64,000 nucleotides of DNA from Heterodontus francisci (taxonomy: Eukaryota). Positions 5,958 through 52,563 of this stretch are shown in pieces (the first letter of the stretch is position 1; every line of letters starts with the position of its first letter). The notes below the pieces were generated by a model that was not told where the DNA came from, did not search any database, and saw nothing but the letters and a program-made list of their open reading frames with translations. Location of the stretch: the NCBI RefSeq assembly GCF_036365525.1, contig NC_090387.1:90127691-90191690 (forward strand), written 5' to 3'. The position numbers were made by a program, and so were the translations under genes.

Positions 5958-6012
5958 ATGTTGGCGAATAATGTACTTCAGTACCTCTCTATTCTGGGAA
6001 TCATTTTCACAG
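5958..6012 (+). CDS. Gene A exon 1, signal peptide MLANNVLQYLSILGIIFT(G)
   Basis: ATG, hydrophobic core, donor CAG|GTAACT, phase 1. Homologous to the gene B leader (Q...LGII..G). Confidence 0.88.
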
Positions 6013-9000
6013 GTAACTGCCCTTTGTATGACCCTCTTTCTCACCAAATAACTTTCCTTTCATGTCAAATGCATCGCTTTCCTCTGTACTGTTTGACTGA
6101 CTCCCTTATCCTCGAGCTTTTTTTCCTGCAATGTTATCTCTCACTGATTCTTCCTATAGGCTACAGCGAAACGTCGGTCAAAGTGACTCAGCTCCCTGAG
6201 AGTGCGAGCACAAACATGGGTACAAACATCTCCTTTCATTGCACGCTTCCCTTCTTTCAAGACGGCCCACCTGTGAAAGTCTACTGGTGGAAGGAGGGTG
6301 AGAATCATTTTTTAAGCACAGGACAAGATGATAGAAAAGTAATTGGCTTCAAGACTAAATTCAGCGGCTTCCTTCGGATAATCAATGTGAGTGTACAGGA
6401 CTCAGGAGTATACTATTGCACTGTCACTCATCGAGGCAAAATCGTTGGAAACGGAACAGGGTCGAAATTAGTTGTAACGGGTAAGTATAAACACCACGAA
6501 TGAGATCGCTGTAACTGTAATATTTCACAGCAAAGATACCCAGCGGATCATTCGTGCTTTCGAATATTTTCATTCTACACTGGCTCACACGTCAAAGCAC
6601 TTCCCAGTTACCTTTTGAACGATTCAGTTTGGAACTCAGATTCCAACTGCTTCTTTGTATAACTTCAATTTACACAGAAAACTTGATAGAGTTACATATT
6701 GATGAGTAATGCAATGCTTCGCCACCATTAAACAAATTAAGTGTGCTTTTAATTCCTGCAGATAGTGTAAACGCGTTCTATCGGATAAACTGCTCGTTCA
6801 TCAGCCCGATTTTCCTCTTAGAAGTCAATTGATTAAAAGATAGCTGTAAAAATCGGCCCCAAAGTTAAACTAGAGTTCAATATGTGAACAGATTCATCGT
6901 ACGATTTACGAGCACTATCTATATAACAAACGCTTCAAATTTGCAATATAAGTGGAGGATGATCCGTCACTGAAGTATATGGGCTGCAATGATCTTCTAT
7001 GGACACGTTTTAACTTCGAGTGATAATCTAAAAACGGCCATAGCAAATCGGCAGCCTGCGTCACATTTGTTCTGACATAAATGGTAATAAAAATCGATAG
7101 AGATATAAAACGGACTGTCGATTTGCTATCACCCGTGTTACACTCTCGCGCAAAAGCAAAACCGACTCGGAGGTGTTTACCTACCGTCGTAAGCTGGCGT
7201 CTTATTCTATTTAATGAGGCAGATTTTCAATTTGCACATCCAGGGTGAACCTGGAGCTGGGAATGAGCCACCTGTTATGGAGACCGTTCCTGATAAGGAA
7301 AATAGAGGTCCAGCTGTTTATATACGGGTTTATCGATCAGAAATGCCAACTAGCAAGTTCGAAATCTCCTCCAGTATTGCCTGTGTGGCTCACTGGTGTG
7401 AGTCCTGCCTCTGAGCTTATGAACTTAAGTTTCATTCCAGAGACTTGAATATGTAATCCAGGCTGACCTTTCAATGTAGTACTGAGGGAGTGCTGCACTG
7501 TTGGAGATGCCGCCTGCCTGATAAGTCGTTCACGCGCGAGCCCATCTACGCTCTCAATTGGATGTAAAAGATCCTACGGCACTATTCGAAGAATTGCGGG
7601 GGATGTTGGCCAATACTTATCCCACTGCAAGCCACTGAAACAGATTTCCCTCTTATTAGTGGATCCATGCTTTGTGCAAATTGGCTGCAGTTTCCCCATC
7701 ATAATATGATGGTATAATTCGAAAGTACTTCATTGTCTGTGTTGGCTTATCGGAGCTGATATTTACTCCCGTCTACGGGTTTATAATTACTTGAACCACA
7801 TATTGAGAGTTTTGAAAGCGGGGTGATAATAACAGTTCATGGCCTCAGCCTGTATCCTGGGCCAAGAAACCTAAATCTCTATCATTTTCCGAATCGTCAG
7901 TAAATAAGATATTGAGCAGTTTCTGAGTTCTGAAGCCTCGACCGCTTCGACAAATTGTGCTTTTTCACCAGTTGTAATACTGGCGCCCTTAGACAGGCTT
8001 TAAATCGATTCAACCCGCTCCTCGGTTCTTTGTGCAACAGATGATTTCAACAAACTTCCTAAATTGCGTAAGTCGTATTATTTGTTTCGTCGAAGGAACC
8101 GTCGAGGGGTTAAGCAGTCTATGATCTTTACCCTTATGGAAAGATCCAGTCTTTCCCCTGAGGTGTATTTTAAATTTGTGAGTTTAGCTTTAAGAGATTG
8201 AAGAACAATCCTCCCTTGTTCCAATTGTTAAAGCCTGAAAATCAGTACTGAATAATAGAATACAACAAGAAATTCTAACGAGCAAATGCGATCGAAAATT
8301 ATACCATTTTTTCAAGAATAAAGAGGGGAACATAAACATCAAGTTTAAATTTAGAAGGTGCCGCTACCAATGTGGCTGCTGAAAGCGCAGAGAAAACAAT
8401 GTCCTGTCACAAATGCAATGATGGGTTTCTAATCTTCAATGATTCACATGTGACTTTTTTTACCTCCATTTTCTAGTTCCGCCAACTCTACTGAAAATTA
8501 CGTCTCAGGAACCTAAACAAGATCCTTCTGCATCTCTGACTGTTGTGTGCACGACATCTCCCTTTTACCCGGAGAATATCAGCATCGTTTGGTATAAGGA
8601 TGGCACCAGAACTTCAACAGGGATAAATCAAATTATTGAACGCAACACCGATGGACTATATGAAGCTTCCAGTCAGTTGCAAGAGACGCATCCTGTCTTG
8701 CCCGGGACCATTTACACCTGCCTGGTGTCTCACAGTACCCTCCACTTTCCAGCCACTTACATTGCTACATATCTCAGCACAGGTAAGATTGCAAATTTCA
8801 GTTATTGCAGATAGAACAGATGCGACTCTTCCGGTTTCATTCATTGGTGTATTCCCCCTCTTTCACCAGGTTTTAAATCCGTGAAAATGTAGGACATCTG
8901 CTTATTTTTGTTCACTTTTAATAAGGTTTAATTCCGTGCCAAGAGCTCCGCTATTACGGTTGTTGGTCTCCTGCCTCATCCTGTGGTTCGCCTGGAAACC

Positions 9001-12000
9001 TGGAGTCACGGTTCAGGTGTGCAACTGACTCTTTAGACAAAACCGGCAGTAACTTGGGGCCTGTAATTTGGTCCGGAATCGCTGTGCCCTGCATCCTACA
9101 ATCCGTGCTCACAATCTGCTGCGGCTATTAAACACTCTACAATGTTAAAATTAATCATTGTCCCTTTCAGTTGCAATCTTATTATCAACAGGAAACTAGT
9201 TCAAAGTGAGATCTAAGAATATACTTTTTCATGTAACTATACGACGGTGAATAAAAATATAAAAATAGCATTGATTTAAATTTGTCTGTTCTTTCAGACC
9301 GCAGGTTTGCTGGGAATAATTTGTCAGACAATAACTCATTGTTTACAGCTGTGTTTGGGTGACAATTTGAACATGTCCTTCATATTTATATATTTATATT
9401 TTGTACTAATATTTTAGATCGTGAAAACATCTCCCATTCCTTACTGATTTCTAGATGTGCATGGGGTGGATTTGTATTTCTAATGGTGGCTTTCATTATT
9501 GGGATGCAATGTCATTTAAAAAGAATAAAGGTAATACAATTCTTCTGTAATTTAAAGACAGCCTTAGAGACTTAAGGAACCATTCAGTGCAAATTACATA
9601 GAATTAGATAGATATTGAAATGCAAAACAGGCTCGTTGTCCTAACAGCGCATATTGGTATTTATTCTCCAAACTCGCAGTATTCAAATCCCATGTCCATT
9701 TAACTCAGCACCTCCCCAACCTGTTATTTAATGCTGGCATGACATCTGATCCATTTCCCAACTTCAGAAGTGCCTTCCACATCTTCAAAACCATCTGTGG
9801 AAAAAGTCTTTCCTGCTCTCTTATAGTTTATGTTATATCTGTATAGATATAACATCAATGGAAAAAGTCCGGCGTAATTTTAACTTTTGATCAAAGTGTA
9901 AAGTTGGCAATATTGGATCAGCCTTAGAAATCGAACCCGATTTGCTCGAATGGAAACCAAAATCAGGCGAGATGTAGAACGGGCAGCCAATCAAATGCTG
10001 CCCGTTTTACACTATCGCCATAATTAAGTCTATTTACTCCGTCCCATCCTCCATAATGTTAAACACAGAAAAATCACCAATAATCTTCTCTGCTCTGATG
10101 AAACAGTCGCACTTTTCAAGAGTTGGTGCAGAGGCGAACTTATTTAGGTAATTGGACGAATCGGGGTGCGTTATTCTGTCACAAAGCAGCGATCTAGTAA
10201 TATTACACAGTGGCGCAGTGGTTAGCACCGCAGCCTCACAGCTCCAGCGACCCGGGTTCAATTCTGGGTACTGCCTGTGTGGAGTTTACAAGTTCTCCCT
10301 GTGTCTGTGTGGGTTTCCTCCGGGTGCTCCGGTTCCCTCCCACATGCCAAAGACTTGCAGGTTGATAGGTAAATTGACCATTAGCAATTGCCACTAGTAT
10401 AGGTAGGTGGTAGGGAAAATATAGGGACAGGTGGGGATGTGATTGGAATATGGAATTAGTGCAGGATTCGTATATAATGGGTGGTTGATGGTCGGCACAG
10501 ACTCGGTGGGCCGAAGGGCCTGTTTCAGTGCTGTATCTCTAAAAACTAAAAAAAAACTTACGCCCCTACCAGCTCACGTAATGAAATGCAACAACTCGAT
10601 GTGATGCTTGAGGGCGATGAAGTCAACAAAATGGGACGAGGCTCGTGTGGAGCATAAACACTGGCATAGACCTGTGGGGCCGAGTGGCCCGTTTCTGTGC
10701 TTTAAATTCTATATAATTCTTTGTAGACTTGAATAAGTCTTGCCATTAGCATTTCGGCAGTCATGGATTCGAATGTATAACGGTCACAGATAAACTGGCA
10801 ATACGCACACGTCTGAATCCAGATTTGTGAACATAATTTAAACTTTTGCATTAAATCTGCCAGCTGTAACCTCTGATTATGTACATACCCGCGGACTGAA
10901 TGCTTCAGTGTAAAATAGTGAACTCCATTCATTGCCAGGAGTAGAGATCTATGCGAAGCCCTCAAATTCTCATGAACAAACAGTTCATTTATCCTAAGTA
11001 ACGCCACATATAAATATGTAACTTTATTTTCAGAATCAGTAGGAAGCGGTTCGATCTATTTCATGCAAGAATGCGTTTGGTCTCATTTCAATGTTTTAAT
11101 ACTTTTACCTCCAATAGCCTGTATAGAAAATGCTCCCTTATATCTGTTCCCGATGTATTTTCCATACACATTGTTTGTTCCTTAGCAAAGATTAAAGCAA
11201 TAAACCGTCCCACCATATCTAAATCATGGAAAATTTTACATACGTTCCGAGATTTAATGCCAATTTGGGAAGATTCAGCGTCTCAAAATTTCCTCCTATC
11301 TCACCCTTTTTTTACGTTTAAGATTAACCTTGCTCTTTTTCTTCTTTCGTTCTTGTATGTAAGCCTCTTTTTGGTTTTAGTGAGAAAGTTAACGTTATAT
11401 TCCAAATGTGGTCCCCAATTGCATTTTTTTTAGCTTTCTCGGGACCGCTTGTATTCGAGGTTCTGGTTTTATGTCCTGGAATTCTATTATCTGTTTAGGG
11501 GTCTGGATGTTGAAAGTGATCTGCCTATAGTGAGATTCAGACTCTTTCTAAATCGCTGTGTGCTAATTCAATATTATTTATTGCATGAATGTTTAGGCTA
11601 GGTATAAACCTTCTCATTTACTTGTGTTAAACTTCTTAAAGGATCTATTCGCTTCGCGTTCTTTCTATAACAATTGTGTCTGCAAATCTATTTAACCTTG
11701 ACTGGTCTGCTCAGTGCGAATAGATTTGTTCTTATCCCGAACTTCCGGTGTGATTGAATAGTAACGGACGAGCTAATTCGATTGGGCTTCACGTTAAATC
11801 CCAGGTCACAGAAACCTTTTTCTTCTTTTATTACTAAGTTAAATGGCTCAAAAAAATCATGTACCGCCGACCGGCGATTTTCCTGTCGACGCTCCCTTTC
11901 GGAAAATCTGAACTGGGAGTCCGCACAATTGAAGTGAGAGCATAAATAAATAACTTGTTTTGTATTTCGGTCCCTGCAGACAGACGCGGATGCAAAAGCG

Positions 12001-12057
12001 CCTTACGTTGCAATACCATTGACAGACTCCAAACATAACTACAGGGATAAACTTTAA
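5958..12057 (+). CDS. Gene A: non-rearranging antigen-receptor-like IgSF receptor (leader-VJ-C1-TM-cytoplasmic), NKp30/VJ-C1-like
   Basis: Exons 5958-6012, 6160-6480, 8477-8782 and 9418-9530 join in frame through canonical phase-1 GT-AG introns with no stops. The terminal exon 11980-12057 is tentative. Confidence 0.85.
6160..6480 (+). CDS. Gene A exon 2, V-set Ig domain with germline-joined J-like G strand
   Basis: Acceptor TTCCTATAG|G. VKVTQ.P...FHC...YWW...DSGVYYC...[11 protein letters not shown]. Donor ACGG|GTAAGT. 321 nt. Confidence 0.95.
7005..7170. mobile_element. Palindromic MITE-like element; related copies at ~9875-10030, 16500-16575 and 20230-20340
   Basis: Inverted arms ATAGCAAATCGGCAGCC / GGACTGTCGATTTGCTAT. 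Confidence 0.5.
7370..7745 (+). mobile_element. DeuSINE (SacSINE1/AmnSINE1-like); minus-strand fragments at ~560-650 and ~22790-22910
   Basis: Deu-domain-like GTACTGAGGGAGTGCTGCACTGTTGGAGATGCC...GGATGTAAAAGATCC...TGTGCAAATTGGCTGC. Confidence 0.75.
8477..8782 (+). CDS. Gene A exon 3, C1-set Ig domain
   Basis: Acceptor TTTTCTAG|TT. LTVVC..SPFYPENISIVWYKDG...NTDGLYEASSQL...YTCLVSH (C1 signatures FYP and YxCxVxH). Donor CAG|GTAAGA. 306 nt. Confidence 0.95.
9418..9530 (+). CDS. Gene A exon 4, connecting peptide and TM (DRENISHSLLISRCAWGGFVFLMVAFIIGMQCHLKRIK)
   Basis: Acceptor ATTTTAG|AT, hydrophobic helix then basic residues, donor AAG|GTAATA. Aligns without gaps to the gene B TM exon. Not in the ORF track. 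Confidence 0.88.
10208..10557 (+). mobile_element. HE1-type V-SINE
   Basis: tRNA head GGCGCAGTGGTTAGCAC...GGTTCAATTC, V-domain GTGGGTTTCCTCCGGGTGCTCCGG, CR1-like tail GGGCCGAAGGGCCTGTTTC, A-rich end. Confidence 0.9.
11980..12057 (+). CDS. Gene A candidate terminal cytoplasmic exon (TDADAKAPYVAIPLTDSKHNYRDKL*)
   Basis: Acceptor TTTCGGTCCCTGCAG|A. Phase 0 matches the TM donor. Contains YxxI. No clear polyA signal found. Confidence 0.5.
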   Translation, partial: TDADAKAPYVAIPLTDSKHNYRDKL

Positions 12058-12849
12058 AGGAAAGGGCAGCATCTGGATGGGAGTCGAAACAGACAGCGTC
12101 AGATTGCTCACCCTAAACCAACAAAATACATCACGATGCAACAAATAGGATGCATCTGGTTCGGAATCGAGCGGTTTTCCTCATGGACGCCCGATTCGCA
12201 ACGTCTGTATTATGCTGGGAAACAAGTCGCATTTGGAATCTATTATGTAAAATCCTGGCTGCTATTGCAACTCCAGGTCTTCTGTTATGTTCCTGTAAAT
12301 CGATTAGTAAAATGTGTATTCCAATGTCACTCGCTTTAGTAGAATTTTCACATGGTTTAGGGTTCACATTATAAATTGTGACTGTCTGTAATGTATTTTG
12401 CTCATTAATATTCAAGACAAAACTACTTTTAATAATGTTTAACACATTGCATAGTTCAGTCATTCCTGACACGTGGCCTGCTAAATCTGAAGCAAATTAT
12501 TAGTTAACGTTTAATCACAAACATGCTTTAATAATATCGGGCTCAGAAATGTTCCGGTTCTGAAATGTAGTGACATTGCGACTGTTCTTTCCTTAAAAAA
12601 ATACAGAACGAATCGCGTAGAATTTCTACGGAAAACTGTCTTCTTAAACATCCCTCCCCGGCCCCTCCACCTCGCCTTCAACAATAAGGGCAAGGAGCAC
12701 ATGGACCTCTTTGTCATGAGATCGAGACCATCCGATCAGCTGCCTCTGCCGCACTCTCCTTTCTATTAGCCCAGGGGGTCAAACTTCCTGCCCTAGGCCT
12801 GAACTTGCAACTTCCTCAACTTTCTGTTATCTCCACTCATGTCCCGTCT

Positions 12850-14540: not shown

Positions 14541-14791
14541 TAGAAACTGGAGACAAGAAGAACTTTCTTTTTACCCTTTAACTCAGTTCGATTTCAGGAG
14601 AAAGATTTGTCTGAATGTTTTGCAATGGAATGTCCCGGTGTTTTCTAAAGGTATTCTCCATATTGTTGCTTTATACGCAATTTTTAAATAAAGTAGCCAT
14701 TAAATCATGATTCTAGCATTTAGGCGTAAATGGTTTAGCGCTAATAGTTTAAATCATGTCATCATTTTGATAACAAATATTGCAATACTCT

Positions 14792-15003
14792 AAAATAAAA
14801 GCAAAATACTGCGGATGCTGGAAATCTGAAATAAAAACTAGAAATGCTGGAACCACTCAGCAGGTCTGGCAGCATCTGTGGAAAGAGAAGTAGAGTTAAC
14901 GTTTCGGGTCAGTGATCCTTCTCACTGTCCCGAAACGTTAACTCTGCTTCTCTTTCCACAGACGCTGCCAGACCTGCTAAGTGGTTCCAGCATTTCTTGC
15001 TTT
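14792..15003. mobile_element. Hairpin-shaped non-autonomous Penelope-repeat element with 14-bp TSD
   Basis: Inverted copies of AGAAATGCTGGAACCACTCAGCAGGTCTGGCAGCATCTGTGG. TATTGCAATACTCT at 14778-14791 and 15004-15017. Confidence 0.85.
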
Positions 15004-15334
15004 TATTGCAATACTCTGATTGCCAAGCAAGATTTTTTACTGGCGTTTCTTTCCTTCAGCAGGTGCGTTTGCTGCAATATCAGGCACACAATAAAGTATT
15101 TCAGAAATTGCAGATTAAAAACCCAAGCTTGGCGCTAATTTGCCAATGTCTTACTATTCATCTCCCTGTTTTACAAACTTGGCGCCGTTCCGCTCTCTGG
15201 CCGCATCTTTCATTTGAGGACGTCGGTATCTGCTGACAACACCCCAAGCTCATGTATCTGAGACATGTTTGTTTTCATAACCTGTACATATCATGGATCT
15301 CAGTGAAGAGGTCCAAGCAAATTAAAATTGGCAA

Positions 15335-19560: not shown

Positions 19561-19689
19561 GGGCGGATATCATGTTTGAATGTTTCCTGCGCAGAGCAAT
19601 GCCAGCAGGCCCCAAAATCCAGACTCCATCCATTCGCAGTTTCAGTCAGTGCGGGTCCACAGCCTTGACGTTTCCCTTCCGCCGTTGTT

Positions 19690-24315: not shown

Positions 24316-24657
24316 AGCGCAGTAGTTAGCACCGCAGCCTCACAGCTCCGGCGACCCGGAGTTCAATTCTGGGTACTGCCTGCGCGGTGTTTGCAAGTTC
24401 TCCCTGTGTCTGCGTGGGTTTCCTTCGGGTTCTCCGGTTTCCTCCCACATGCCAAAGACTTGCAGGTTGATAGGTAAATTGGCCATTATAAATTGCCCCT
24501 AGTATAGGGAGGGAAATATAGGGACAGGTGGGGATGTGGTAGGAATATGGAATTAGTGTAGGATTAGTATAAATGGGTGGTTGATGGGCGGCACAGACCC
24601 GGTGGGCCGAAGGGCCTGTTTCAGTGCTGTATCTATAAAAATATAAATAAATAAATA
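24316..24657 (+). mobile_element. HE1-type V-SINE, second copy
   Basis: Highly similar to 10208-10557 along its length. Confidence 0.9.
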
Positions 24658-26127: not shown

Positions 26128-26162
26128 AAATGTTTCAGGTCTGAGACCTTTCATCAGAATTG
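26128..26162 (-). ncRNA. Minimal hammerhead ribozyme core in a Penelope terminal repeat
   Basis: Minus strand reads CTGATGA-aaggtc-tca-gacct-GAAAC. Confidence 0.65.
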
Positions 26163-26513
26163 GGAAAAGTTAGAAATGCAATAGGTTTTGAACAAGTGAA
26201 AGGGGGTTGGTGGGGAAATGAAATGACAGGATGGAGTGCAGGAGAGAAAAAATGACAAAATGTTTCATTGTGCAAAGCCAAAGGGAGGGGTAATGCGACA
26301 CGTAAGTAAACAAATATCGAGTCTCGAGGAAGTGTGAACGGCGGGAATATAAACAGAAAATGCTGGAGATGCTCAGCAGGTCGAGCAGCATCTGCAGAGA
26401 GAGAAAAATAAAATTAATGTTTAAGGTCGATGACCCTTCATTGGAAATAGGAAAAGTTAGAAAGAAGGTCAAAGTAGGTCAAACTGGGAGGGTGGAAAAA
26501 GAACAAAAGGGGT

Positions 26514-29500
26514 AGGCGGTGGCATAGTGGTATTATCACTGGACTAGTAACCCAGAGACCCAGGGTATTTCTCTGGGACATGGTTTCGAATCCCGCCACA
26601 GCATAAGGTGGAATTTGAATTTAATTAATAAATCTGGAATTACAATATAGTGGAGGGATAATGGAGGGAACTTGTGCCTGGAGTCGGAGGCGGTAGGGGA
26701 AGTCCTAAATGAATACTTTGCTTCAGTATTCACTAGTGAGAGGGACCTGGTCATTTGTGAGGGCAGCGTCAAACAGGCTGATATGCTCGAACTGGTTGAG
26801 GTTAAGAGGGAGGATGTGCTGGAAATTTTGAATGATATGAGGACAGATAAGTTTTCAGGGCCAGACGGGATATACCCAAGGATATTACGGGAAGCGAGGG
26901 AAGAGATTGCCGCACATTTGGTGATGATCTTTGTGTCCTCACTGTCCACTGGAGTAGTACCGGATGTTTGGAGGGTGGCAATGTTATTCCCTTGTTCAAG
27001 AAAGGGAATAGGGATAACCCTGGGAATTATAGACCAGTCAGTCTTACGTCGGTCGTGGGAAAATTATTGGAGTGGATTCTGAGACAGGATTTATGATTAT
27101 TTGGAAAAGCATGGTTTGATTAGAGACAGTCAGCATGGCTTTGTGAGGGGCAGGTCATAAGAAGGCGTATGGTATGTTGGCTTTCATGAACAAGGGGATT
27201 GAGTTTAAGAGCTGCGAAGTAATGCTGCAACTCTATAAGGCCCAGGTTAGGCCACACTTGGAATATTGTGTTCAGTTCTGGTCGCCTCATTATAGGAAGG
27301 ATGTGGAAGCTTTAGAGAGGGTGCAGAGGAGATTTACCAGGATGCTGCCTGGACTGGAGGGCATGTCTTACGAAGAAAGACTGAGAGAGCTAGGGCTTTT
27401 CTCATTGGAGCGAAAAAGGATGAGAGGTGACTTGATAGAGGGGTAGAAGATGATGAGAGGCATATTTAGAGTGGATAGCCAGAGACCTTTTCCCAGGGTG
27501 GAAAGGGCTATCACCAGGGGGCATAATTTTAAGGTGATTGGAGGAAGGTTTCGGGGAGAGGTCAGAGGTAGGTTCTTTACACAGAGAGTGGTGGGTGCGT
27601 GGAATGCGCTGCCAGCGGTGGTAGTAGAAGCAGATACATTAGGGACATTTAACCGACTCTTGGATAGGTACATGGATGATAGTAGAATGAAGGGTAGGTA
27701 GGTAGTTTGATCTTAGAGTAGGTTAAAGGTTCAGCACAACATCGTGGGCCGAAGGGCCTGTACTGTGCTGTACTGTTCTATGTTCTATGTTCTAATGATG
27801 GCCATGAAACCATTGTCGATTGTTGTAAAACCCATCTGGTTCACTAATGTCCTTGAGGGAAGGAAATCTGCTGTCCTTACCTGGTCTGGCCTACATGTGA
27901 CTCCAGACCCACAGCAATGTGGTTAACTCTTACATGCCCTCTGAAATGGCCTAGCAAGCCACTCAGTTGTATCTAACCGCTACAAAGTCTATCAAAAGGA
28001 ATGAACCCGGACGGACCACCCAGCATCGACCTAGGCACCGGAAACGACAACAGAAAACCCATCCCTGTCGACCCTGCAAAGTCCTCCTTACTAACATCTG
28101 GGGGCTTGTGCCAGAGTTGGGAGAGCTGTCCCACAGACTAGTCAAGCAACAGCCTGACATAGTCATACTAACGGAATCATACCTTACAGACAATGTCCCA
28201 GACACTGCGATCACCATCCCCGGGTATGTCCTGTCCCACCGACAGGACAGACCCACCAGAGGTGGTGGCACTGTGGTATACAGTAGGGAGGGAGTTGCCC
28301 TGGGAGTCCTCAACATCGACTCCGGACCCCATGAAGTCTCATGGCATCAGGTCAAACAAGGGCTATGTAACCTCCTGCTGATTACCACCTACCGCCCTCC
28401 CTCAGCTGATGAGTCAGTACTGCTCTAAGTTGAACACCACTTGGAGGCAGCACTGAGGGTGGCAAGGGCACAAAATGTACTCTGGGTGGGGGACTTCAAT
28501 GTCTATCACCAAGAGTGGCTCGGTAGCACCACTACTGACCAAGCTGGCCGAGTCCTAAAGGACATAGCTGCTAGCCTGGGTCTGCAGCAGGTGGTGGGGG
28601 AACCAACACGAGGGAAAAACATACTTGACTTTGTCCTCATCAATCTGCCTGCCGCAGATGCTTCTGTCCATGACAGCATTGGTAGGAGTGACCACCGCAC
28701 AGTCCTTGTGGAGACGAATCCTTCACATTGAGGATACCGTCCATCGTGATGTGTGGCACTGTCACCGTGCTAAATGGGATAGATTTCAAACAGATCTAAC
28801 AATGCAAAACTGGGCATCCATGAGGCACTGTGGGCCATCAGCAGCAGCAGAATTGTACTCATCCACAATCTGTCACCTCATGGCCCGGAATATCCCACAC
28901 TCTACCATTACCAACAAACCCTGGTTCAAAGAAGAGCGCAGGAGGGAATGCCAGAAGCAGCACCAAGCATACCTCAAAATGAGGTGTCAACCTTGTGAAG
29001 CTACAACCCAGGACTACTTGCATGCCAAACTGCATAAGCAGCATGCGATAGACAGAGCTAAGCGATCCCATAACCAACTGATCAGATCTAAGCTCTGCAG
29101 TCCTGCCACATCCAGCCATGAATGGTGGTGGACAATTAAACAACTAACTGGAGGAGGTGACTCCACAAATATCCCCATCCTCAATGATGGGGGAGCCCAG
29201 CACATCAGTGCGAATGATAAGGCTGAAGCATTTGCAACAATCTTCAGGCAGAAGTGCCGAGTTGATGATCCATCTCGGCATCCTCCTGAAGTTCCCAGCA
29301 TCACAGATGCCAGACTGCAGCCAATTCGATTCACTCCGCGTGATATCAAGAAACGACTGAAGGCACTGAATACTGCAAAAGCTATGGGCCCTGACAATAT
29401 TCCGGGAATACTCCTGAAGACGTGTGCTCCAGAACTTGCCGCACCCCTAGCCAAGCTGTTCCAGTACAGCTACAACACTGGCATCTACCCTGCAATGTGA

Positions 29501-30900
29501 AAAATTGCCCAGGTATGGAACCCGGCCAATTACCGCCCCATCAGCCTACTCTCAATCATCAATAAAGTGATGGAAGGTGTCATCAACAGTGCCATGAAGC
29601 AGCACTTGCTTAGCAATAACCTGCTCAGTGACGCTCAGTTTGGGTTCAGCCAGGGTCACTCAGCTCCTGACCTCATTACAGCCTTGCTTCAAACATGGAC
29701 AAAAGAGCTGAACTCAAGAGGTGAGGTGAGAGTGACTGCCCTTGACATCAAGGCGTATTTGACCGAGTATGGCATCAAGGGGCCCTTGGAAAAGTGAGGT
29801 CAATGGGAATCAGGGGGAAATCATCCACTGACTGGAGTCATACCTAGCGCAAAGGAAGATGGTTGTGGTTGTTGGAGGTCAATCATCTGAGCTCCAGGAC
29901 ATCACTGCAGGAGTTCCTCAGGGTAGTGTCCCAGACCCAACCATCTTCAGCTGCTTCATCAATGACCTTCCCTCAATCATAAGGTCAGAAGTGGGGATGT
30001 TCGCTGATGATTGCACAATGTTCAGCACCATTCGTGACTCCTCAGATACTGAAGCAGTCCGTGTAGAAATGCAACAAGACCTAGACAATATCCAGGCTTG
30101 GGCTGATAAGTGGCAAGTAACATTCGCGCCACACAAGTGCCAGGCGATGACCATCTCCAACAAGAGAGAATCTAACCATATCCTCTTGACATTCAACGGC
30201 ATTACCATTGCTGAATCCCCCACTATCAACATCCTAGGGGCTACCATTGACCAGACACTGAACTGGAGTAGCCATCTAAATACCGTGGTTACAAGAGCAG
30301 GTCAGAGGATAAGAATCCTGAGGCTAGTAACTCACCTTCTGACTCTCCAAAGCCTGTCCACCATCTACAGGGCACAAGTCAGGAGTGTGATGGAATACTC
30401 TCCACTTGCCTGGATGGGTGCTGCTCCAACAACAGTCAAGAAGCTCGACACCATCTTGGGCAAAGCAGCCCGCTTGATTGGCACACCATTTACAAACATT
30501 CACTCCCTCCACCACGGACGCACAGTAGCAGCAGTGTGTACCATCTACAAGATGCACTGCAGCAATGCACCAAGGCTCCATAGATAGCACCTTCCAAACC
30601 CGTGACCTCTACCAACTCGAAAGACAAGGGCAGCGAATACACGGGAACATCACCACCTGCAAGTTCCCCTCCAAGTCACACACCATCCTGACTTGGAACT
30701 ATATCGCCGTTCCTTCACTGTCGCCGCGTCAAAATCCTGGAACTCACTTCCTAACAGCACTGTAGGTCTACCTACCCCAAATGGACTGCAGCAGTTCAAG
30801 AAAGCAGCTCACCGCCTCCTTTTCTCAAGGGCAATTAGGGATGGGCAATAAATGCTGGCATAGCCAGTGATGCCCACATCCCATGAATGAATGAAAAAAA
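26514..30900 (+). mobile_element. Near full-length single-ORF APE-RT LINE (CR1 group) with tRNA-like 5' head; decayed
   Basis: A box TGGCATAGTGG 26520-26530, B box GTTTCGAATCC 26583-26593. APE motifs (NIWGL, PDIVILTESYL, VGDFN, SDH) and RT motifs (GPDNIP, QFGF, GVPQGS, FADD). 3' end GGGCAATAAATG...(ATGA)n. Contains stops and frameshifts. Confidence 0.88.
26646..27790 (+). mobile_element. Young CR1 fragment with internal deletion, inserted in the 5' UTR of the tRNA-headed LINE
   Basis: EVLNEYFASVFT and GPDGIYPR; jumps from GRS to KKAYG at 27158/27159; (TGTTCTA)n tail. Confidence 0.9.
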
Positions 30901-40255: not shown

Positions 40256-40301
40256 ATGTTTGTGTGGCAGTGCATATGGGCCCTGGGGATTATTTGCGAA
40301 G
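40256..40301 (+). CDS. Gene B exon 1, signal peptide [15 protein letters not shown](G)
   Basis: ATG, donor AAG|GTATTC, homology to the gene A leader. Separated from the V exon by an N gap. Confidence 0.8.
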
Positions 40302-43300
40302 GTATTCTCCGTTATAATCAGCCCTTTTTCTTTGTTTCTTCCAATTAATCTTGTAGNNNNNNNNNNNNNNNNNNNNNNNNNNNNNNNNNNNNNNNNNNNN
40401 NNNNNNNNNNNNNNNNNNNNNNNNNNNNNNNNNNNNNNNNNNNNNNNNNNNNNNNNNNNNNNNNNNNNNNNNNNNNNNNNNNNNNNNNNNNNNNNNNNNN
40501 NNNNNNNNNNNNNNNNNNNNNNNNNNNNNNNNNNNNNNNNNNNNNNNNNNNNNNNNNNNNNNNNNNNNNNNNNNNCCATCTAACTATGCGTGCCCAAATA
40601 TATTTTATTTGTATTGTCTAACTACATTTTTAATATTTTATAGCTGCTTCCGGTCGGGTGTCACAAACTCCTGAACGCACCAGTGTGATGGCCGGTACAG
40701 ATGTTACTTTCCATTGCACGGCGAGCTCTGTTCAGAATAATTCAGATGTGCGTGGTTATTGGTGGAGACTTGGCGACAATGACTTACTGCAACCATCTTC
40801 TGACGGCAGAAAACGTTTTTTTCCCTTTAAGAACGGAACAACTTCCTTTCAGATCCTCAGTGTCCGTGTCTTCGACTCTGGATCCTATTACTGCGGAGTG
40901 AGATACACAGAAAACACAATCGTAAATGGAACCGGATCGAAACTTGTTGTGCTCGGTAAGCGGCCTTGGAGAGTTTTGCGACTGTTGCTATTGTAAGACG
41001 ATCATTGTAAAATAACGAAATGAGGCGGAGTGGCCGCGTTAATGAGACTTCTTTTCAAACACTGTACCTCTTGTTCAGATATTTGCAATGCAGATATAAT
41101 TGAAGCGCTTCAACTATATATAGAATTAATTAGAACGTATCATAAATTGATTTGATTATTTCGTGATTTTATCCATGACATCAGTTGATGTAAGTAATTA
41201 AGAAACATTATTTCAAATCAGTTCTGACGTTATATCACGGTTATCACCCATTATGATGTTTATTATCCAGTACATAAACGGTAAGTAGTTCTGGTTTCCA
41301 GAACACTACACTGAAGTGGGATCTGAAGGTTCACTGGATTGGATCCTGGGATGAGAGGGTTTTCCTGGGATGAGACTGAGAAAATAGGCTCTCTATTCTC
41401 TGGAGTTCAGAAAAATGAGTAGTGATCCCATTGAAACGGACACGATTCTGAACGGGCTTAACAGGGTAGACACTGACAGGTTGTTTCCCCTGGCTGGGAA
41501 TTTTGCATGCTAAAACTCGCGTGATAAGGAAAGTGATCGCCTCTAATTTCAGAGAATCTTAAAGTATAGAAACGGGCCTGTCGTTCCATCGTGCTGTGCA
41601 AGCTCTTTCAAAGAGCGAACCAGTTACTTCCACTCCCCTGCAATTCCCAAATTACTCTTTAAGTCTACCTTTTCAGTTATATCCAACTCCATTGTGAAAG
41701 TTACCATTGAATCTGTTTCCACCATGCTTTCAGGCAGGGCATTCCCGGTCATAACTATCAATGTGGAAATTGTGATTTCAAAAACTCGCATGGATCCTGT
41801 TACAATCATCTGGTTCATGGTTTGTATTAATTTTCTAGCGGTAACTTTTAATTTGGGAATTCAATTATTTTTTATTGTAAGACAAATGAAAAATCCTGGT
41901 TTGAGAAGCTGGCAAACAAACCGGGGGTGGTTACAAATTCAAGGGTGGTCCATGTTTATTTAATATTGGCAAGTGTAAAGACCCTACACATTGGGAACCC
42001 CTATTAATTTGTTGATGGAGATGGAGTGCCTACAGCTACCTCAGTCAGGGGTTTAAATTATTCATATGATTTCCCAGAACAGACAGAAGAACTAAAGTTC
42101 AAAAATCTCTCCATGAGTACTTACAGAGACAGTGTTAGAGATCCATAACGCCACAGCTGACCTCGTTTAGTTGGGCAATTGGAACCAGAAAGTTTGGGAG
42201 AGTTTGTTCTGTTATTGTTAGCAATATCAGTTATTCATGTAGGTATCAGGAATCAAACAGAAGACTTGGAGTTCGAAATAATGAGTTTAAATTGCTATCT
42301 GGGACATCCCATTTGTACCACCTGCTATAGAGATGGATGATGCATGGGGTGTCTGTTGGTTTTTTAATATGTATGCTTGCTGACAGACAAATATAAGGCT
42401 TTTGGAAAAGCAGTTGGCATTTAAACAAGAATTGGCTTTTGGAAAATGATGTTGGCTTTTGGAAAGCTGTTGGCATTTGGAAGTCAGTTGGATTCAGGCG
42501 CAAAGCAGCTCTCAGGAACCAGGAATGTGTCTGTTTTGAGGCAGGCTCATGCTCAAGCTGGGAAATCCAGATTCGTGATGTGTTGAATGTGAACTGGAGA
42601 GTTTGCTGGCCGAAGCTAGAGGGAGAATTCCCTGGTCATCTAAAACTTCGGAGACAGCTGAGAAATTAATGAAATCGAAATGAATTCCTAAGAGCTGTGA
42701 AATACTTTGGATTGGCCCCAGGAAAAGTGAACAAACGGCTAAGACCCTGTTACGTATTGGGAAATTCTTGGGGTGGAAGTTACAGTCAAATAGCAGTGTT
42801 CTGTTGACATATCGAGTCTGAAGTATATATCTTCATGTTCTGATTTAAGTTCTGTTTTAAGTTTAACATATAAGTACTTACAAATTGTACTGTTAAATTA
42901 GTAGTGTTTTGCTTTGTTTAACTCTTGTACAGTAAAGTTTTTTTTAAGACCTGGAATTTTGTGGCATAATTTACCAACAATAACGGGGAATTCGACTTTC
43001 TCTTTCTGAAAGTTAACAGTCCCGAACGGGATCATAACAAAACTGATACAATTAAGCTATTTGGTTCTCGTGTAAGTAGATTTTAAGGCGAAAGTTGCAG
43101 AGGTTGAACTGGCTGTAAAAGTAAAGACTGAACGAGCAGATGGATCAAATCCTGAAATATGGCATCAATTGTGTTATCAATTGTGTAAAAACATATCTTC
43201 TTTAATTCGTTACCCTCTGCTTGCCGACCCTCCTGCTACCAGAAATAATTATTTATTCAAGCAAAACCCCTCATCATCTTGGGCACCTCCAGTAAAACTC

Positions 43301-46300
43301 CCCTTAACCTTTTTTTGTTCTAAGAAAGACAATCTTAGTTTATCGAGTCTCTCCACAAAACTCAAGTCCCTCATCCTTGTTATGATTCTAGTGAATCTAT
43401 TCTGCACCATCTTCAAGAGCTTAACATCATTAGAGCCCCACTGTCCAACACCCAATGAACCGCGACAAGTGATTTTGTTACTAGGGGTACATTCTAAGTT
43501 AAAAGCTGTCAATAACACCCATCCTGAACCCATCAAGAGACATTTTTAATTTGAATGGATTCTTCTAAAACGAAGAAGATGTGAAGTAGCCACGTCCTAG
43601 GCCATTGTCAGTCACCACAGCGAAGAGGTTCTATGTCCCAACACAGAGGCAAGATATGAGACCATTTTGACCTTAAATGCAGCTTCCTGTAGAGACTGAG
43701 AGGGAGACCTTTATGTTTTAATTGTCATGTAGATGGTTCCAGGTTTCCTTGGGGATTTAAAACAGAAGATTAATTATTTTTTGAGCAACATTCACTCCCG
43801 AAATGGTCGCAACTGCACCCACAGATGCATTCACTCACGTGCACGCATGCATGCACACAAACACACAGACAAAAAGAGACAGATGGAGAGGAAAAGAGAA
43901 AAGGGGTTTGAAGTGAGTTAGGATTTTGGTGTCCTGCCTTCACATTGAGGATACCCTCTATAGTGTTGCGTGGCACTACCACCGTGCTAAATGGAACAGA
44001 TTTCAAACAGATTTAGCAGTGCAAATTTGGACGTCCATGAGACGCTGTGGGCCATCTGCAGCAGTAAAATTGTACTCAAACACAATCTGTAACCTCATGG
44101 CCTGGCATATCCCCCATTCCACCATTACCATCAAGCCGGGAGACCAACAATGGTTTAATGAAGAGTGCAGGAGAGCATGCCAGGAGCAGCACCCGACATA
44201 CCTCAAAATGAGGTGTCACCTTGGTGAAGCTACAACCCAGGACTACTTGTGTGCCAAACTGTGTAAGCAGCATGCAATAGACAGAGTTAAGTGATCCCAT
44301 AAGCAAATGATCAGATCTAAACTCTGTAGCCCTGCCACTTCCAGCCGTGAATGGTGGTGGACAATTAAACAACTAACTGGAGGAAGAGGCTCCAGAAATA
44401 TGCTCATTCCCATTGTTGGGGTGACCCAGCACATCATTGTAAAAGATAAGGTTGAAGCATTTGCAACAATCTTTAGCCAGAAGTGCCAAGTGGATTATCC
44501 ATCTCGGCCTCCTCCTGAAATCCCCAGCATCACAGATGCCAGACTTCAGCCAATTCGATTCACTCCACGTGATATCAAGAAACGACTGAACGCACTGGAT
44601 ACTGTAAAGACGATGGGCCCTGACAACATTCCAGCAACAGTACTGAAGACCTATGCTCCAGAATTTTCTCGTGACACTGGCCAAGCTGCTCCAGTACAGC
44701 TACAACACTGGCAACTATCCGGCAATGTGGAAAATTGCCCAGGTATGTCCTGCACATAAAAGGCAGGACATGTCGAACCCGGCCAATATTTGCCCCATCA
44801 GCCTACTCTCAATCATCAGTAAAGTCATGGAAGGTGTCATCGACAGTGCCTTCAAGCAGCACTTGCCCTGCAATAACCTGCTCAGTGATGCTCAGTTTGG
44901 GTTCCGCCAGGGCCACTCAGCTCTTGACCTTTTTACAGCCTCGGTTCAAACATGGACAAAAGAGCTGAACTCCAGAGGTGAGGTGAGAGTGACTGCTATT
45001 GACATCAAGGCAGCATTTGACCGAGTACGGCATCAAGGAGCCCTGACAAAAACTGGACTCAATGGGAATTAGGAGGAAAACTCTCTGCTGGTTGGATTCA
45101 TACCTAGCACAAAAGATGATGGTTGTGGTTATTGGAAGTCAATCATCTCAACTTCAGGATATCAAAGCAGGGGTTCCACAGGGTAGCGTCCTAGGCCCAA
45201 CCATCTTCAGCTGCTTCTTCAATGATCTTCCCTCCATCATAAGGTCAGAAGTGGGGATGTTCGCTGAAGATTGCACAATGTTCAGCAGCATTCATGACTC
45301 GTCACAGACTGAAGCAGTCCGTGTAGAAATGCAGTAAGACCTGGACAATATCCAGGCTTGGGCTGATAAGTGGCAAGTAACATTTGCGCCACACAAGTGC
45401 CAGGCAATGACCATCGCAAACAAAGGAGAATCTAACAATCATCTCTTGACATTCAATGGCATTACCATCGCTGAATCATCTACTATCAACATTCTGGGGG
45501 TTACCATTGACCAGAAACTGAACTGAAGTAGCCATATAAATACTATGGCTACAACAGCAGATCAGAGGCTAGGAATCCTGCGGCGAGTAACTCATCTTCT
45601 GACTCCCCAAAGCCTGTCCACCTTCTACAAGGCACAAGTCAGGAGTATGATGGAATAATATCCACTTGCCAGAATGGGTGCAGCTCCAACAACACTCAAG
45701 AAGCTCCACATTATCCAGAACAAAGCAGCCCACTTGATTGTAACATCCACAAATATGCACTCCAGCCATCACTGATGCACGGTGGCAGCAGTGTGTACCA
45801 TCTACAAGATGCACTGCAGCAACATACCAAGGCTCCTTAGACAGCACCTTCCAAACCCGCAACCTCTACCAACTAGAAGAACAAGGGCAGCAAATGCATG
45901 AGAGCACCACCACCTGCAAGTTCCCCTCCAAGTCACACTCCATCCCGACTTGGAACTGTATCACCGTTCTTTCACTGTCGCTGGTCCAAAATCGTAGTAC
46001 TCCCTTCCTAATAGCACTGTGGTGGACCAACCCCCACATGGACAGCAGCGGTTCAAGAAGACAGCTCACCACCACCTTCTCAAGTGTAATTAGGAATGGG
46101 CAATAAATGCTGGCCTAGCCTGTGACACCCACAGCCCCATAAATGAATAAGTAAAAAAGAACATTCCTTCAAGGCACAAAAACCCCAAAAGTAAAGGCAG
46201 TCAACCGTGAATAACAAAGGATTGTATATGATTAAAAGAAAAGGCCTATGAAGTTGTCAGAACTAGTAGTAAACCTGCAGATTGGGAGGATTTTAGAATA

Positions 46301-49300: not shown

Positions 49301-52300
49301 GTAATTTAAAGCTGGTCTTCTAGTGCCATGAAACTATCATCGATAGTCATAGAAACCCATCCGATTCACCAATGTTTGTAAGAGAAGGATATCTTAACTG
49401 CCCTCCGAAATGGCCAAGCATGCCACTCAGTTGTCAATGGCAATTAGAGATGGGCAACAAATGCCAGCGATGCCGACATCCATGAAAGAACTTTCCAAAA
49501 AAATCCCCCTTTTGGACCCTAATCGGCCCTCCTCCTCCTTTTACTATTAATATGTCTATCCCTGTCATTCTCTTTTCATACTCCTTCTTTGCTTCTCTTA
49601 TTTGCTTTTTCACTTCTCCTCTGAACCTTCTATATTCAACGTGTCTCTCCATTGTATTATCTATTTTGCATCTGTCATAATCACACGTTTTATTCTTCAT
49701 CTTCATTTTTATCTATTTTGTTATCCATGGAGCTCTGTTTGCTATACCTTTGCACTTTGAAGGTAATATATCTTGACTGTGCCTGATATATCTCTTCTTT
49801 GAAGGTAGCCCAATGTTCTGCTACCATTTTCTGCCAACCTTTCATTCCAATTTATTCGACCCAGATCCATTCTTACCCCATTGAAGTTGGCTTTCCCCCA
49901 GTTAATTATTCTTACTCTAGACTGTTCTTTCTCATAGACAACATAAACCTTATGATACAATGATTACTGTGCCCAAAATGCTTTCCAACTGATATTTGAT
50001 CGCCTCCTTTCTCATTGGACTGGAAACATTCTGCTGTAGAAATTTTTCCTGAACACAGTCGAGGAACTCTTCCACTCTCTACCCATTCCACTACTATACC
50101 CCAGTCTATATTCAGATAATTAAAGTCCCCCATTATAGCATCCAGTCCTACCTTTCTTTGAGCTAGGTATCTGTTATAGCCGCAACATCATACTCCCACA
50201 TGTCAATTTGCACCTGTAATTCACCAATCTTATTAACTACACTCCGTTCATTCATGTACATGCACATTAACCCTGATTTAAACTTCATTACTTGCTCCCT
50301 TACTCTGGCCCCATCTTATAACTTATTATTCCTTTATCTGGTGCTATCTATCTCTTCCAATATGATGTGCATCTTGGTAGTACTAACACTCTCACCTTAT
50401 GCACCTTATTCCTCTTATTTTACCTTTATACGCTGGTGCCCGCCCGTCCCCACCCCCCACCCCCCCTCCACCCCCCACCCCCACCCCGCACCCACTTGAA
50501 ATTTAGTTTAAACCCGCCCCAACCACACTTGTGAACCTCCCCGCGAGGATATAGGTCCCAGTCCAGTTGAGGTGCAACCCTTTCCTTTTGAATAGGTGTC
50601 TCCTGCCCTCGAACTGGTTCCAATGCCCCAAAAATCTGAAGCCCTCCTTCCTGCCCCATGCTTCAAGCCACGCATTGATCCTCCTTATATTCCTATTTCT
50701 ACTCTTGCTAGTATGTGGCACTGGGAGTAATCTAGAGATTACAAACCTCGAGGTCCTACTCTTTACCTTCCTCCCTAGCTCCTGAAAATCTGACAGTAGT
50801 GCCTCAATACCTGCCCTTGCTATGTCGTTGGTACCAACATGCACCACAATTTATTTAAACCTACCTAAAACAAAACTGAGCAAAAAGATACTGACGTTCA
50901 GTGTAAAGGTGATTTCTGCGTGGACTAAGGTCAAAGCGGCGATGGCCTGTGTGTCTGGTCGCACAAAATACTTTCTCCGATTAGCGCAATACTGTTTTAA
51001 ATTGTCCGCATGTTATACTAGAACGTTAATGGGAGAATCAAGTTCAGAAATACAAACCAGAAATGCTGGAACCACTCAGCAGGTCTGGCAGCATCTGTGG
51101 AAAAAGAAGCAGAGTTAAGGTTTCGGGTCAGTGACCCTTCTTCGGAACCTGAAGAAGGGTCACTGACCCGAAACCTTAACTCTGCTTCTCTTTCCACAGA
51201 TGCTGCCAGACCTGCTGAGTGGATCCAGCATTTCTTGTTTTTATTTCAGATTTCCAGCATACGCAGTATTTTGCTTTAATTTGAATCAAGTTTAGAGTTG
51301 GGAAGTAACTAAAGTTTAATTTGGAATTATCCTATCATTCAAGAAGCAGATAGCGAATTCTATCAGTGATTTATTTTTTTACCTGTGACCCAGAGTCGTG
51401 CCGTTATATTCAGGAAGACTGGATGCCAAACAGAACTAAAATAGCTAAGTCCAGATGATCAGTGTATGCTTGTTCCACAGCTTCCCCGGAGCCCGTGAGA
51501 CTGGTTCCCAAAGCAGCCGGAACCAACTCATCTACTCTAACACTTGTGTGTGAAACAGCCGAGTTCTACCCGGAGGGTCTCACCTTCACTTGGTATATAA
51601 ATGACATCAACATTGTGATGGGGATCAGCACCATTAAAAAGCTCAATTCGGAGGGAATGTATGAAGCTTCCAGCAGTTTGAAAGCATCACAGCCAGCCCA
51701 GAGCAGGGCTGTTTATACCTGCGTGGTATCTCACCGCACACTGCAGAGTCCAGCTGTCGCTGTTTACTTTGATTCCAATTCTAATTCAGGTAAGATGCTG
51801 ACATTTGTGCAGATATTGTCAGTCACTGACTACTATCGATCTGTTTTATTTGTGTTCAATCCTTTTAAAGATTGATCTTATTTGCGGAGTTGTAAAGCAG
51901 ATAAAATACATTTCCCACCGCCGGAGGAATAGAGTGTAATTGATGCAGATCATAATTATAAACTGAATTAAATGAATCTTTAGCAGATTCAATTCCTCGT
52001 TATTTAACAGAGATAGAAATACACAGAATTCCTTATTCTCATTTGTTGAAGTATTTTTTTGTTTACTGATTCCATGATATCACAGGCGGATGAAGAATAA
52101 CGCTGCGACTTGCGACACAGTCTTCATAACTTCAAAGCTCATCATTGGCGTGGTCGGTGAAAATCCAACAATTGTATTTTAACCCTGAAACGTAGATAAT
52201 ATGCGTTCTGGATTCACTTTCAGAGGAAACATGAATCAATGAAACTATATTGTGTATCGAATTAATGAAATCAGCTGGGGCAAGTTAACAGTCTCAAGTC

Positions 52301-52563
52301 CTCATGCCTTGCTCTGGAAGCACGAGAAATCTACATCGTACAACTAACAGCCAGGTTGCAAAGCATGGGCGACAATGAAGAACTGGGTATTGATTATTAC
52401 TAATAATAGTTTTATTATCTTCCTTGCAGTTGGTAGACCTTCACTCAATTATCCACTGATTGCTGGATGTACAGCGAGTGCACTGATATTTCCAGCCCTC
52501 GTCACCTTCATTGAGAGGTGTTGCCAACTCAATAATTGTAAAGGTAAAGAGCCTCCTATGTAG
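40256..52563 (+). CDS. Gene B: paralogous non-rearranging VJ-C1-TM IgSF receptor
   Basis: Exons 40256-40301, 40644-40955, 51481-51789 and 52430-52543 are all phase 1, open, with canonical splice sites. The 3' end is unresolved: read-through stop at 52561-52563, or downstream exons not found. Confidence 0.83.
40357..40575. other. Assembly gap (219 N)
   Basis: Run of N. Confidence 1.
40644..40955 (+). CDS. Gene B exon 2, germline-joined VJ-type V domain
   Basis: Acceptor TTTTATAG|CT. RVSQTP...FHC...YWW...DSGSYYC...[11 protein letters not shown]. Donor TCG|GTAAGC. 312 nt. Confidence 0.95.
41798..43039 (+). mobile_element. Probable solo LTR
   Basis: Termini TGTTACAATC...GATCATAACA (TG...CA, imperfect inverted repeat). 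No clear TSD. Confidence 0.5.
43930..46160 (+). mobile_element. 5'-truncated second copy of the 26.5-30.9 kb LINE family
   Basis: Colinear with 28720-30900 (HIEDT...[18 protein letters not shown], same 3' end). Confidence 0.92.
46160..47095 (+). mobile_element. CR1 ORF2 middle fragment
   Basis: [25 protein letters not shown]. Confidence 0.85.
47415..50850 (-). mobile_element. Long decayed CR1 including the ORF1 SGNH/GDSL esterase part
   Basis: 50503-50847 VHVGTNDI...GLHLN, then GDFN (APE), RT remnants and the 3' UTR. Confidence 0.88.
49162..49503 (+). mobile_element. tRNA-derived SINE made of the head and tail of the 26.5-30.9 kb LINE
   Basis: A box TGGCATAGTGG 49173-49183, B box GTTCAAATCC 49239-49248. 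Follows the LINE 5' UTR up to CCACTCAGTTG, then the LINE 3' end GGCAATTAG.GATGGGCAA.AAATG. Confidence 0.85.
51045..51282. mobile_element. Hairpin-shaped Penelope-repeat element with TSD and hammerhead core, in gene B intron 2
   Basis: ~100-bp near-perfect inverted repeat centred at ~51147. GAATCAAGTT at 51035-51044 and 51283-51292. CTGAAGA 51149-51155, GAAAC 51170-51174. Confidence 0.88.
51481..51789 (+). CDS. Gene B exon 3, C1-set Ig domain
   Basis: Acceptor TTCCACAG|[22 protein letters not shown]...[12 protein letters not shown]...YTCVVSH. Donor CAG|GTAAGA. 309 nt. Confidence 0.95.
52430..52543 (+). CDS. Gene B exon 4, TM ([38 protein letters not shown])
   Basis: Acceptor TTCCTTGCAG|TT, donor AAG|GTAAAG, ungapped homology to the gene A TM exon. 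Confidence 0.88.

Follow-up and report, generated by a model that had tools for sequence, protein, structure and literature searches.

Non-rearranging VJ-C1 genes (UrIg/UrIg2, PRARP, NKp30, SIRP) hold a central place in discussions of the origin of antigen receptors. NKp30 combines a germline VJ-type V domain with an Arg in its transmembrane (TM) segment and lacks a C domain, while the NITRs form a teleost-only paired multigene family with a VJ-type V domain plus an I-type domain. Fu et al. (2019, J Immunol 202:1992; cited in PMC10751288 and PMC11599192) reportedly described the PRARPs as the products of a linked gene pair with a non-rearranging VJ domain, a C domain, a TM segment and tails bearing tyrosine motifs, and they have reportedly been found from bony fish to birds. 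In UrIg, which is secreted, the C domains number three, and in UrIg2 they number 9-11 (PMC12227049; PDB 9dmx). The SIRPs are defined as paired members with an immunoreceptor tyrosine-based inhibitory motif (ITIM) tail, a positively charged TM residue with a short tail, or a neutral short tail, each with one V-set and two C1-set domains (PMC12975943). Here we analyze a stretch of 64,000 nucleotides from the horn shark Heterodontus francisci (NCBI RefSeq assembly GCF_036365525.1, contig NC_090387.1, positions 90,127,691 to 90,191,690 of the forward strand), hereafter the window, which holds two adjacent genes, A and B. Both are annotated yet uncharacterised members of an unnamed chondrichthyan family of germline V(J)-C1, probably paired, receptors, of which full-text searches of the literature returned no description.

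The closest described systems each share part of this plan. Like genes A and B, the shark genes for UrIg and UrIg2 do not rearrange, have a split leader and encode the VJ domain in one exon along with C1-type domains, but the family described here has one C1 domain followed by a TM segment. Genes A and B also have the non-rearranging VJ, one C and TM architecture reported for the PRARPs, although the family has been seen only in cartilaginous fishes. With NKp30 and the NITRs the family shares a germline VJ-type V domain in innate activating or inhibitory receptors; unlike NKp30, A and B have a C1 exon between V and TM, and neither NKp30 nor NITRs were among the top matches for the V exon in the PDB. 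In the SIRPs, too, the V domain does not rearrange, has a J-like G-x-G strand and comes ahead of one or more C1-set domains, and there are soluble splice variants and a paired logic, but the present family has a single C1 domain, a conserved N-G-T on the J strand and a large chondrichthyan expansion. Finally, immunoglobulin (Ig) light chains and T-cell receptors (TCR) have in common with it the V-C1 order, the split leader, phase-1 introns and a G strand of the form G-x-G-[ST]-x-L-x-V, whereas the family lacks recombination signal sequences (RSS) and separate J segments, has Asn in place of the J Phe/Trp, carries ITIM tails or a TM Arg of its own and is not predicted to pair through V-V contacts.

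Gene structure and expression

The window is vertebrate-type DNA (GC content 43.6%, observed-to-expected CpG ratio 0.49), interrupted by a single gap of 219 N, in which two intact genes lie on the + strand in the order A, B. Both present the same layout, with a split leader, a single-exon V domain that includes a germline J strand, a C1-set exon and a TM exon (Table 1), as checked exon by exon against RefSeq proteins of 246-261 aa. All internal exons of the two genes have an AG acceptor and a GT donor in the sequence, and the leader, V and C1 exons of both end in phase 1. The V-set and C1-set models of Pfam score above their cut-offs (26 bits for V-set and a gathering cut-off of 21 bits for C1-set) in each gene. 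The J-type strand GTGSKLVV is found in both V exons, which splice straight to C1, and a search for RSS-like heptamer/nonamer pairs on both strands of the 64 kb found none, against about one in shuffled sequence. Since V and J occupy one exon, RSS are absent and RNA links V directly to C1, the genes are non-rearranging.

These results agree with the original prediction, made from the letters of the window, in its description of a tandem, same-strand VJ-C1-TM pair of identical exon layout, with a built-in GTGSKLVV strand and no RSS. Its estimates of identity between A and B (40-45% for V and about 35% for C1) also come close to the values obtained here, which are 44.1% (45/102) for V and 42.9% (39/91) for C1 in pairwise comparison and 40.8% and 36.0%, respectively, in the alignment of the family. 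The leader, V, C1 and TM exons that it listed are all real, but the last coding exon of gene A was missing from the list, and its end coordinate, 52563, is the read-through TAG of gene B. For gene A there are transcripts that splice the exons together, with joints between V and C1, between C1 and TM and between TM and tail.

The RNA evidence for gene A comes from three runs of one sample and covers only the exonic parts of the gene. Contigs of runs X1 and X2 contain the V to C1 joint (6480/8477), and contigs of run X1 contain those from C1 to TM (8782/9418) and from TM to the last exon (9530/11980), all of them with GT..AG borders; upstream, one contig extends 123 letters beyond the start of the V exon. 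A further GT..AG joint, found in all three runs, leads from C1 directly to the last exon (8782/11980) and thus skips the TM exon. The omission of this 113-nt exon shifts the frame of the last exon, which then reads RRGCKSALRCNTIDRLQT up to a stop at 12036-12038 and yields a TM-less, soluble isoform. Another contig (run X2, record 12) extends from the terminal part of V through C1 and the last exon into roughly 690 nt of 3' untranslated region, which goes on past 12059. The RefSeq proteins P0001 and P0005 are isoforms of gene A, the exons of which tile them exactly with one split-codon residue between pieces. In isoform X3 (P0005) a donor at about 6290, inside the V exon and after WWKE, removes half of the V domain; none of the gene A splice joints seen in the RNA contigs corresponds to it. 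In the introns of the gene, RNA contigs pile up at very high summed depth in two places (Table 1), with A-rich loose ends behind 10543/10544. These pile-ups are an abundant repeat, a short interspersed nuclear element (SINE) or the tail of a long one (LINE), and do not belong to the gene itself.

Gene B corresponds to P0011, a protein of 261 aa named 'immunoglobulin lambda-1 light chain-like isoform X2', which its exons tile exactly. The assembly gap lies 55 nt after the leader donor and 68 nt before the V acceptor (40643) and breaks no exon. Because the codon split over intron 1 yields Ala, residue 16 of P0011, and because the paralogue P0017 is colinear with gene B across the site, no coding exon is expected in the gap. 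Two ends are available to the TM exon: a GT donor at 52544, as in RefSeq isoform X2 with its one extra codon, or read-through into GKEPPM and a TAG at 52561-52563, a tail like that of Mustelus P0021. The downstream exon that supplies the extra codon of isoform X2 was not located. The Cys-rich juxtamembrane segment (52510-52563), similar versions of which are kept in relatives, suggests a possible palmitoylation site.

No further family exons or pseudogene pieces were found in the window, where the remaining matches are LINE fragments that arise via chimeric gene models. LINE copies with long reverse-transcriptase/endonuclease open reading frames (ORFs) fill the 28-kb spacer between A and B and the 10.5-kb V-C1 intron of gene B. 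Some RefSeq models of paralogues are themselves chimeric with transposons, since P0030 matches LINE reverse-transcriptase ORFs at its N-terminus and P0003 matches repeats at its C-terminus.

Table 1. Exons of genes A and B and other features of the window (positions are those of the 64,000-nucleotide stretch)
Feature	Position	Strand	Details
Gene A leader exon	5958-6012	+	Opens with ATG at 5958; 18 codons and 1 nt, ending in phase 1 at a GT donor; residues 1-18 of RefSeq P0001 and P0005
Gene A V(J) exon	6160-6480	+	V-set (Pfam, 39 bits); YWWK, DSGVYYC, germline G strand NGTGSKLVV; RNA joint
Gene A C1-set exon	8477-8782	+	FYPENISIVWYKDG ... YTCLVSH; Pfam, 50.3 bits; RNA contig over 8476-8782
Gene A stalk/TM exon	9418-9530	+	113 nt; SLLISRCAWGGFVFLMVAFIIGM; residues 168-204 of P0005; skipped in isoform X2
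Gene A last coding exon	11980-12057	+	TDADAKAPYVAIPLTDSKHNYRDKL and stop after the TM exon; tblastn, tiling, RNA joint
Gene B leader exon	40256-40301	+	ATG at 40256, 15 codons plus 1 nt, GT donor at 40302; residues 1-15 of RefSeq P0011
Assembly gap	40357-40575	.	219 N (real length may differ); inside the leader-V intron of gene B
Gene B V(J) exon	40644-40955	+	V-set (Pfam, 41.3 bits); residues 17-119 of P0011
Gene B C1-set exon	51481-51789	+	Contains YTCVVSH; Pfam, 44.7 bits; residues 121-222 of P0011
Gene B stalk/TM exon	52430-52543, or to 52563 by read-through	+	Residues 224-260 of P0011
High-depth RNA pile-ups	7460-7659; 10060-10659		SINE or LINE-tail repeat in gene A introns
LINE copies	26500-30900; 43900-45900; 53200-54600		Long reverse-transcriptase/endonuclease ORFs
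Transposon-type matches	4653-4964; 29558-30152; 44815-45400; 54072-54431
Transposon-type matches	10293-10457; 24392-24589	-

Extent of the family and its signalling classes

A profile search retrieved 63 named chondrichthyan proteins from about 14 species of sharks, rays and chimaeras, distributed over the genera Heterodontus, Scyliorhinus, Mustelus, Carcharodon, Chiloscyllium, Hemiscyllium, Heptranchias, Pristiophorus, Leucoraja, Pristis, Hemitrygon, Mobula and Callorhinchus; the next match was mammalian Ig kappa, at about 1e-10. When the search was extended exhaustively with a hidden Markov model (HMM) to 1.84 billion representatives clustered at 50% identity, 343 proteins were found at E<=1e-30. 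Among the top 150 of these matches, which also include giant multi-Ig proteins, each short entry (<=520 aa) has family motifs such as NG.G[ST] and Y.C.VSH, and the source organism was chondrichthyan in 10 of 10 matches sampled. The 63 named proteins and the many more HMM representatives support the multigene family of germline receptors of the Ig superfamily (IgSF) that had been proposed for cartilaginous fish. Many of the horn-shark members share one 99.65-Mb record. The SIRP-, tapasin- and light-chain-like misnaming that the original prediction had foreseen was also encountered: automatic names in use for members of the family include Ig lambda light chain-like, SIRP-alpha-like, SIRP-beta-like and tapasin-related-like, to which are added NCR3 ligand 1-like (B7H6), CD276 and major histocompatibility complex (MHC) class II beta-like.

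In the tree of the family, the clades of A and B each hold both sharks and rays. It follows that the duplication that separated A from B predates the shark-ray split, and hence that it is old, as had been supposed from the divergence of the two genes. The nearest horn-shark paralogue of gene A is P0006, 80% identical over V-C1, in a group that includes the ITIM-tailed P0007 and P0008. The clade of gene B (support 100/100) comprises seven members from sharks and rays, six of which have a short neutral tail, most of them together with a TM Cys and a Cys-rich juxtamembrane segment.

Three signalling classes are represented in the family, with 31 ITIM-tail, 14 TM-charged and 14 short-tailed forms among 82 members. 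Proteins of the long-tail class have four tyrosines, in the contexts V.Y..L, TVYAQ, LTYAxL (ITIM) and TEYAxL (similar to an immunoreceptor tyrosine-based switch motif, ITSM), spaced 22-23/14/23, a spacing that may resemble that of the SIRP-alpha tail. In the TM-charged class the tail is short and a single column in the outer third of the TM segment recurrently holds Arg or Lys, and the third class has a short neutral tail. Gene A is of the TM-Arg type with a short tail, the Arg and a Cys both falling in the outer third of its TM segment (LLISRCAWGG), and gene B belongs to the neutral short-tail lineage. A sensitive tblastn search found no relics of an ITIM exon downstream of gene A or gene B.

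When a tree of the 82 members is rooted with Ig kappa, the classes intermingle even within sister pairs, such as P0023 (ITIM) with P0033 (TM-Arg) and P0009 (ITIM) with P0004 (TM-Arg), and the tree calls for no fewer than 23 changes of type. As read from the sequences, this interleaving is the birth-and-death pattern of paired receptors. A search with the four-tyrosine tail (residues 228-335 of P0048) returned 78 word-sharing candidates and only matches from the same species, in a procedure that is blind to distant relatives and silent on SIRP, and the ESM atlas gave no usable match for the tail.

J strand, predicted fold and pairing

In Ig and TCR, the phenylalanine or tryptophan of the [F/W]-G-x-G motif encoded by J segments is packed into the interface between the V domains. 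Among 36 aligned members of the family the G-x-G of the J-type strand is invariant or nearly so, and in most of them the aromatic residue is replaced by Asn. HMM alignments place the Phe of the light-chain FGxG motif opposite the Asn of an N-G-T sequon on the G strand, which lies at 6454-6462 in gene A and at 40928-40936 in gene B and is kept by most of the 36 members. If glycosylated, this sequon would block V-V pairing of the kind seen in the variable fragment (Fv). The comparison with TCR chains made in the original prediction applies to the layout of the genes and stops there: Asn stands in place of the J aromatic, and the ITIM tails or TM Arg follow the logic of innate paired receptors.

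An AF2 model of the gene B protein, with a mean predicted local distance difference test (pLDDT) score of 83, shows V and C1 domains as well as a TM helix. Residues 118-219 of the model superpose on domains of MHC II, on IgNAR C domains and on CH3 domains with root-mean-square deviations of 1.5-2.1 A. In a structure search the top rows, which include B7-H6, PD-L2, BTN, MHC II, IgNAR, TCR V, CD79b, SIRP-gamma and UrIg2, tie at Z 13-15, so that no single nearest fold can be named. The ESM atlas was equally undiscriminating for the whole of gene B, returning Ig-like, SIRBL, kappa-like, NCR3LG1 and tapasin-like clusters at 0.95-0.96.

A test for complex formation between the ectodomains of A and B was passed with a score of 0.63, against 0.00 for the best control. 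Among solved complexes 51 of 78 attain this mark and among mismatched pairs 2 of 108 (39 of 65 and 2 of 126, respectively, for eukaryotes), and 7 of 44 blind neighbouring gene pairs pass as well. Between runs, no fewer than 95% of the contacts coincide, and the pLDDT of the partner is at least 81. All predicted contacts are between the C1 domains, via strands C, C', F and G, and none between the V domains. The result supports a predicted ability to dimerise through C1, and does not distinguish homodimers from heterodimers or show which members of the family would pair.

Competing readings and biological meaning

Taken together, these data are best explained, with a probability that we put at roughly 0.7, if A and B belong to a large family of germline-encoded, type I innate 'paired' immunoreceptors that, as far as seen, is confined to the chondrichthyans. 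Their proteins follow a common plan of signal peptide, V domain with built-in J strand, one C1 domain, TM segment and variable tail, in which the V domain would act as one unit, unlike an Fv, in binding a putative ligand. Phosphatases of the SHP type would be recruited by the ITIM forms, and the TM-Arg forms, gene A among them, would couple to an adaptor of the FcR-gamma/DAP12 kind bearing an ITAM (an immunoreceptor tyrosine-based motif for activation). The TM-skipped transcript of gene A might provide a soluble decoy, and gene B, with its TM Cys and Cys-rich juxtamembrane segment, may be a non-signalling or partner chain, possibly by C1-C1 pairing.

Several observations weigh against this reading. 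The restriction to cartilaginous fishes is based on the named matches and on the sample of 10, not on a full census, and the roles assigned to ITIM/ITSM tails and to the TM Arg are putative ones, read from motifs. Gene B is devoid of any signalling feature, and its gene model is that of RefSeq. For gene A, the TM-skipped form appears in all three RNA runs and the TM form in one of them, although contig depth is no measure of their ratio, and its short tail retains a single YxxI motif (APYVAI). With regard to pairing, the predicted C/C'/F/G face differs from the ABED face by which C domains of Ig and TCR meet, and the pass in the complex test could reflect the model's memory of Ig-like dimers.

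The family might instead be the cartilaginous-fish branch of SIRP, with A and B as co-orthologues of SIRP alpha/beta/gamma in which a single C1 domain stands in place of two, and hence as ordinary members of a family already well described. Many members are indeed named SIRP-alpha-like or SIRP-beta-like by NCBI, ITIM tails, charged TM segments and short tails make up the same triad in the family, and a 'SIRBL' cluster is among its nearest clusters in the ESM atlas. When the family profile was compared with the PDB, domain d3 of SIRP-alpha was the best single C1 match (49.7 bits, among the four chains with per-domain scores) and its d1-d2 reached 67.1 bits. That value, however, is below the 82.5 bits of Ig lambda V-C; the V domain of gene A alone is closer to Ig light chains (1.5e-8) than to SIRP-alpha's V domain (4.8e-5), SIRP is absent from the top 60 matches of either C1 exon searched singly, and the RNA joints, which run from V to C1 to TM, give an ectodomain with one C1 and not two. 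We consider a SIRP branch a less likely but real alternative. The proposal that the family is not a plain orthologue of SIRP or of germline-joined Ig light chains is favoured by the HMM scores, with some probability left to a relationship with SIRP. In the same comparison UrIg2 scored 59.5 bits for V-C1, below both Ig lambda and SIRP-alpha, 40.0 for C3 and 33.6 for C2. UrIg2 was also considered as the closest relative and rejected, the whole-chain match of single C1 exons to 9dmx being made up of three weak C-domain matches of about 20-22 bits each.

A further reading makes A and B the partner chains of a germline, TCR-like heterodimer, a relic of the antigen receptor that existed before RAG. 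The two genes are adjacent, on the same strand and of V(J)-C1-TM type with a split leader, both have a Cys in the outer TM segment, both lineages have been kept from sharks to rays, and the complex test was passed through C1-C1 contacts (0.63 versus 0.00). This pass, though, is blind to the difference between hetero- and homodimers and is shared by some blind neighbouring pairs, the prediction lacks V-V contacts, and the Phe/Trp of the Fv interface is replaced by the Asn of the sequon; furthermore, the clade of A mixes ITIM and TM-Arg forms, as is typical of self-sufficient paired receptors. Such a heterodimer appears improbable, and we regard as similarly doubtful the more specific proposal that A-type and B-type chains pair by C1 as a germline two-chain receptor, a living non-rearranging counterpart of the pre-RAG receptor, in a family that would be sister to the Ig/TCR lineage and not an offshoot of SIRP. 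More improbable again is that A and B are ligands of the B7/B7H6 kind and not receptors: some members are automatically named NCR3LG1-like or CD276 and B7-H6 heads the structure search (Z 15.1), but it is tied there with dozens of rows, TCR V, MHC II C1, SIRP-gamma and UrIg2 among them, the V domain has a J-type G-x-G strand, and the recurrent TM Arg and the paired ITIM/ITSM tails are features of receptors. The RefSeq name of gene B and the status of Ig lambda as best two-domain match in the PDB might finally be taken to indicate germline-joined Ig light-chain genes or dead copies of them. This is scarcely credible given that both genes have TM exons, intact frames and canonical splice sites, that gene A is transcribed, that paralogues have ITIM tails, and that matches within the family score above 160 bits, where Ig kappa chains reach 55-58.

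In kind, then, this is an ordinary paired receptor family of the IgSF, and its genes are already in RefSeq. It is large and expressed, predates the split between sharks and rays, has members in chimaeras, and appears in databases under at least seven misleading automatic names. Naming it and establishing its proper phylogeny would tidy the annotation of shark genomes. As a family of paired receptors, it is a candidate for the functional counterpart, in cartilaginous fishes, of paired receptors of the SIRP/KIR/LILR/NITR type, and it adds a V(J)-C1 lineage with which models of the proto-MHC and of antigen-receptor precursors can be tested.

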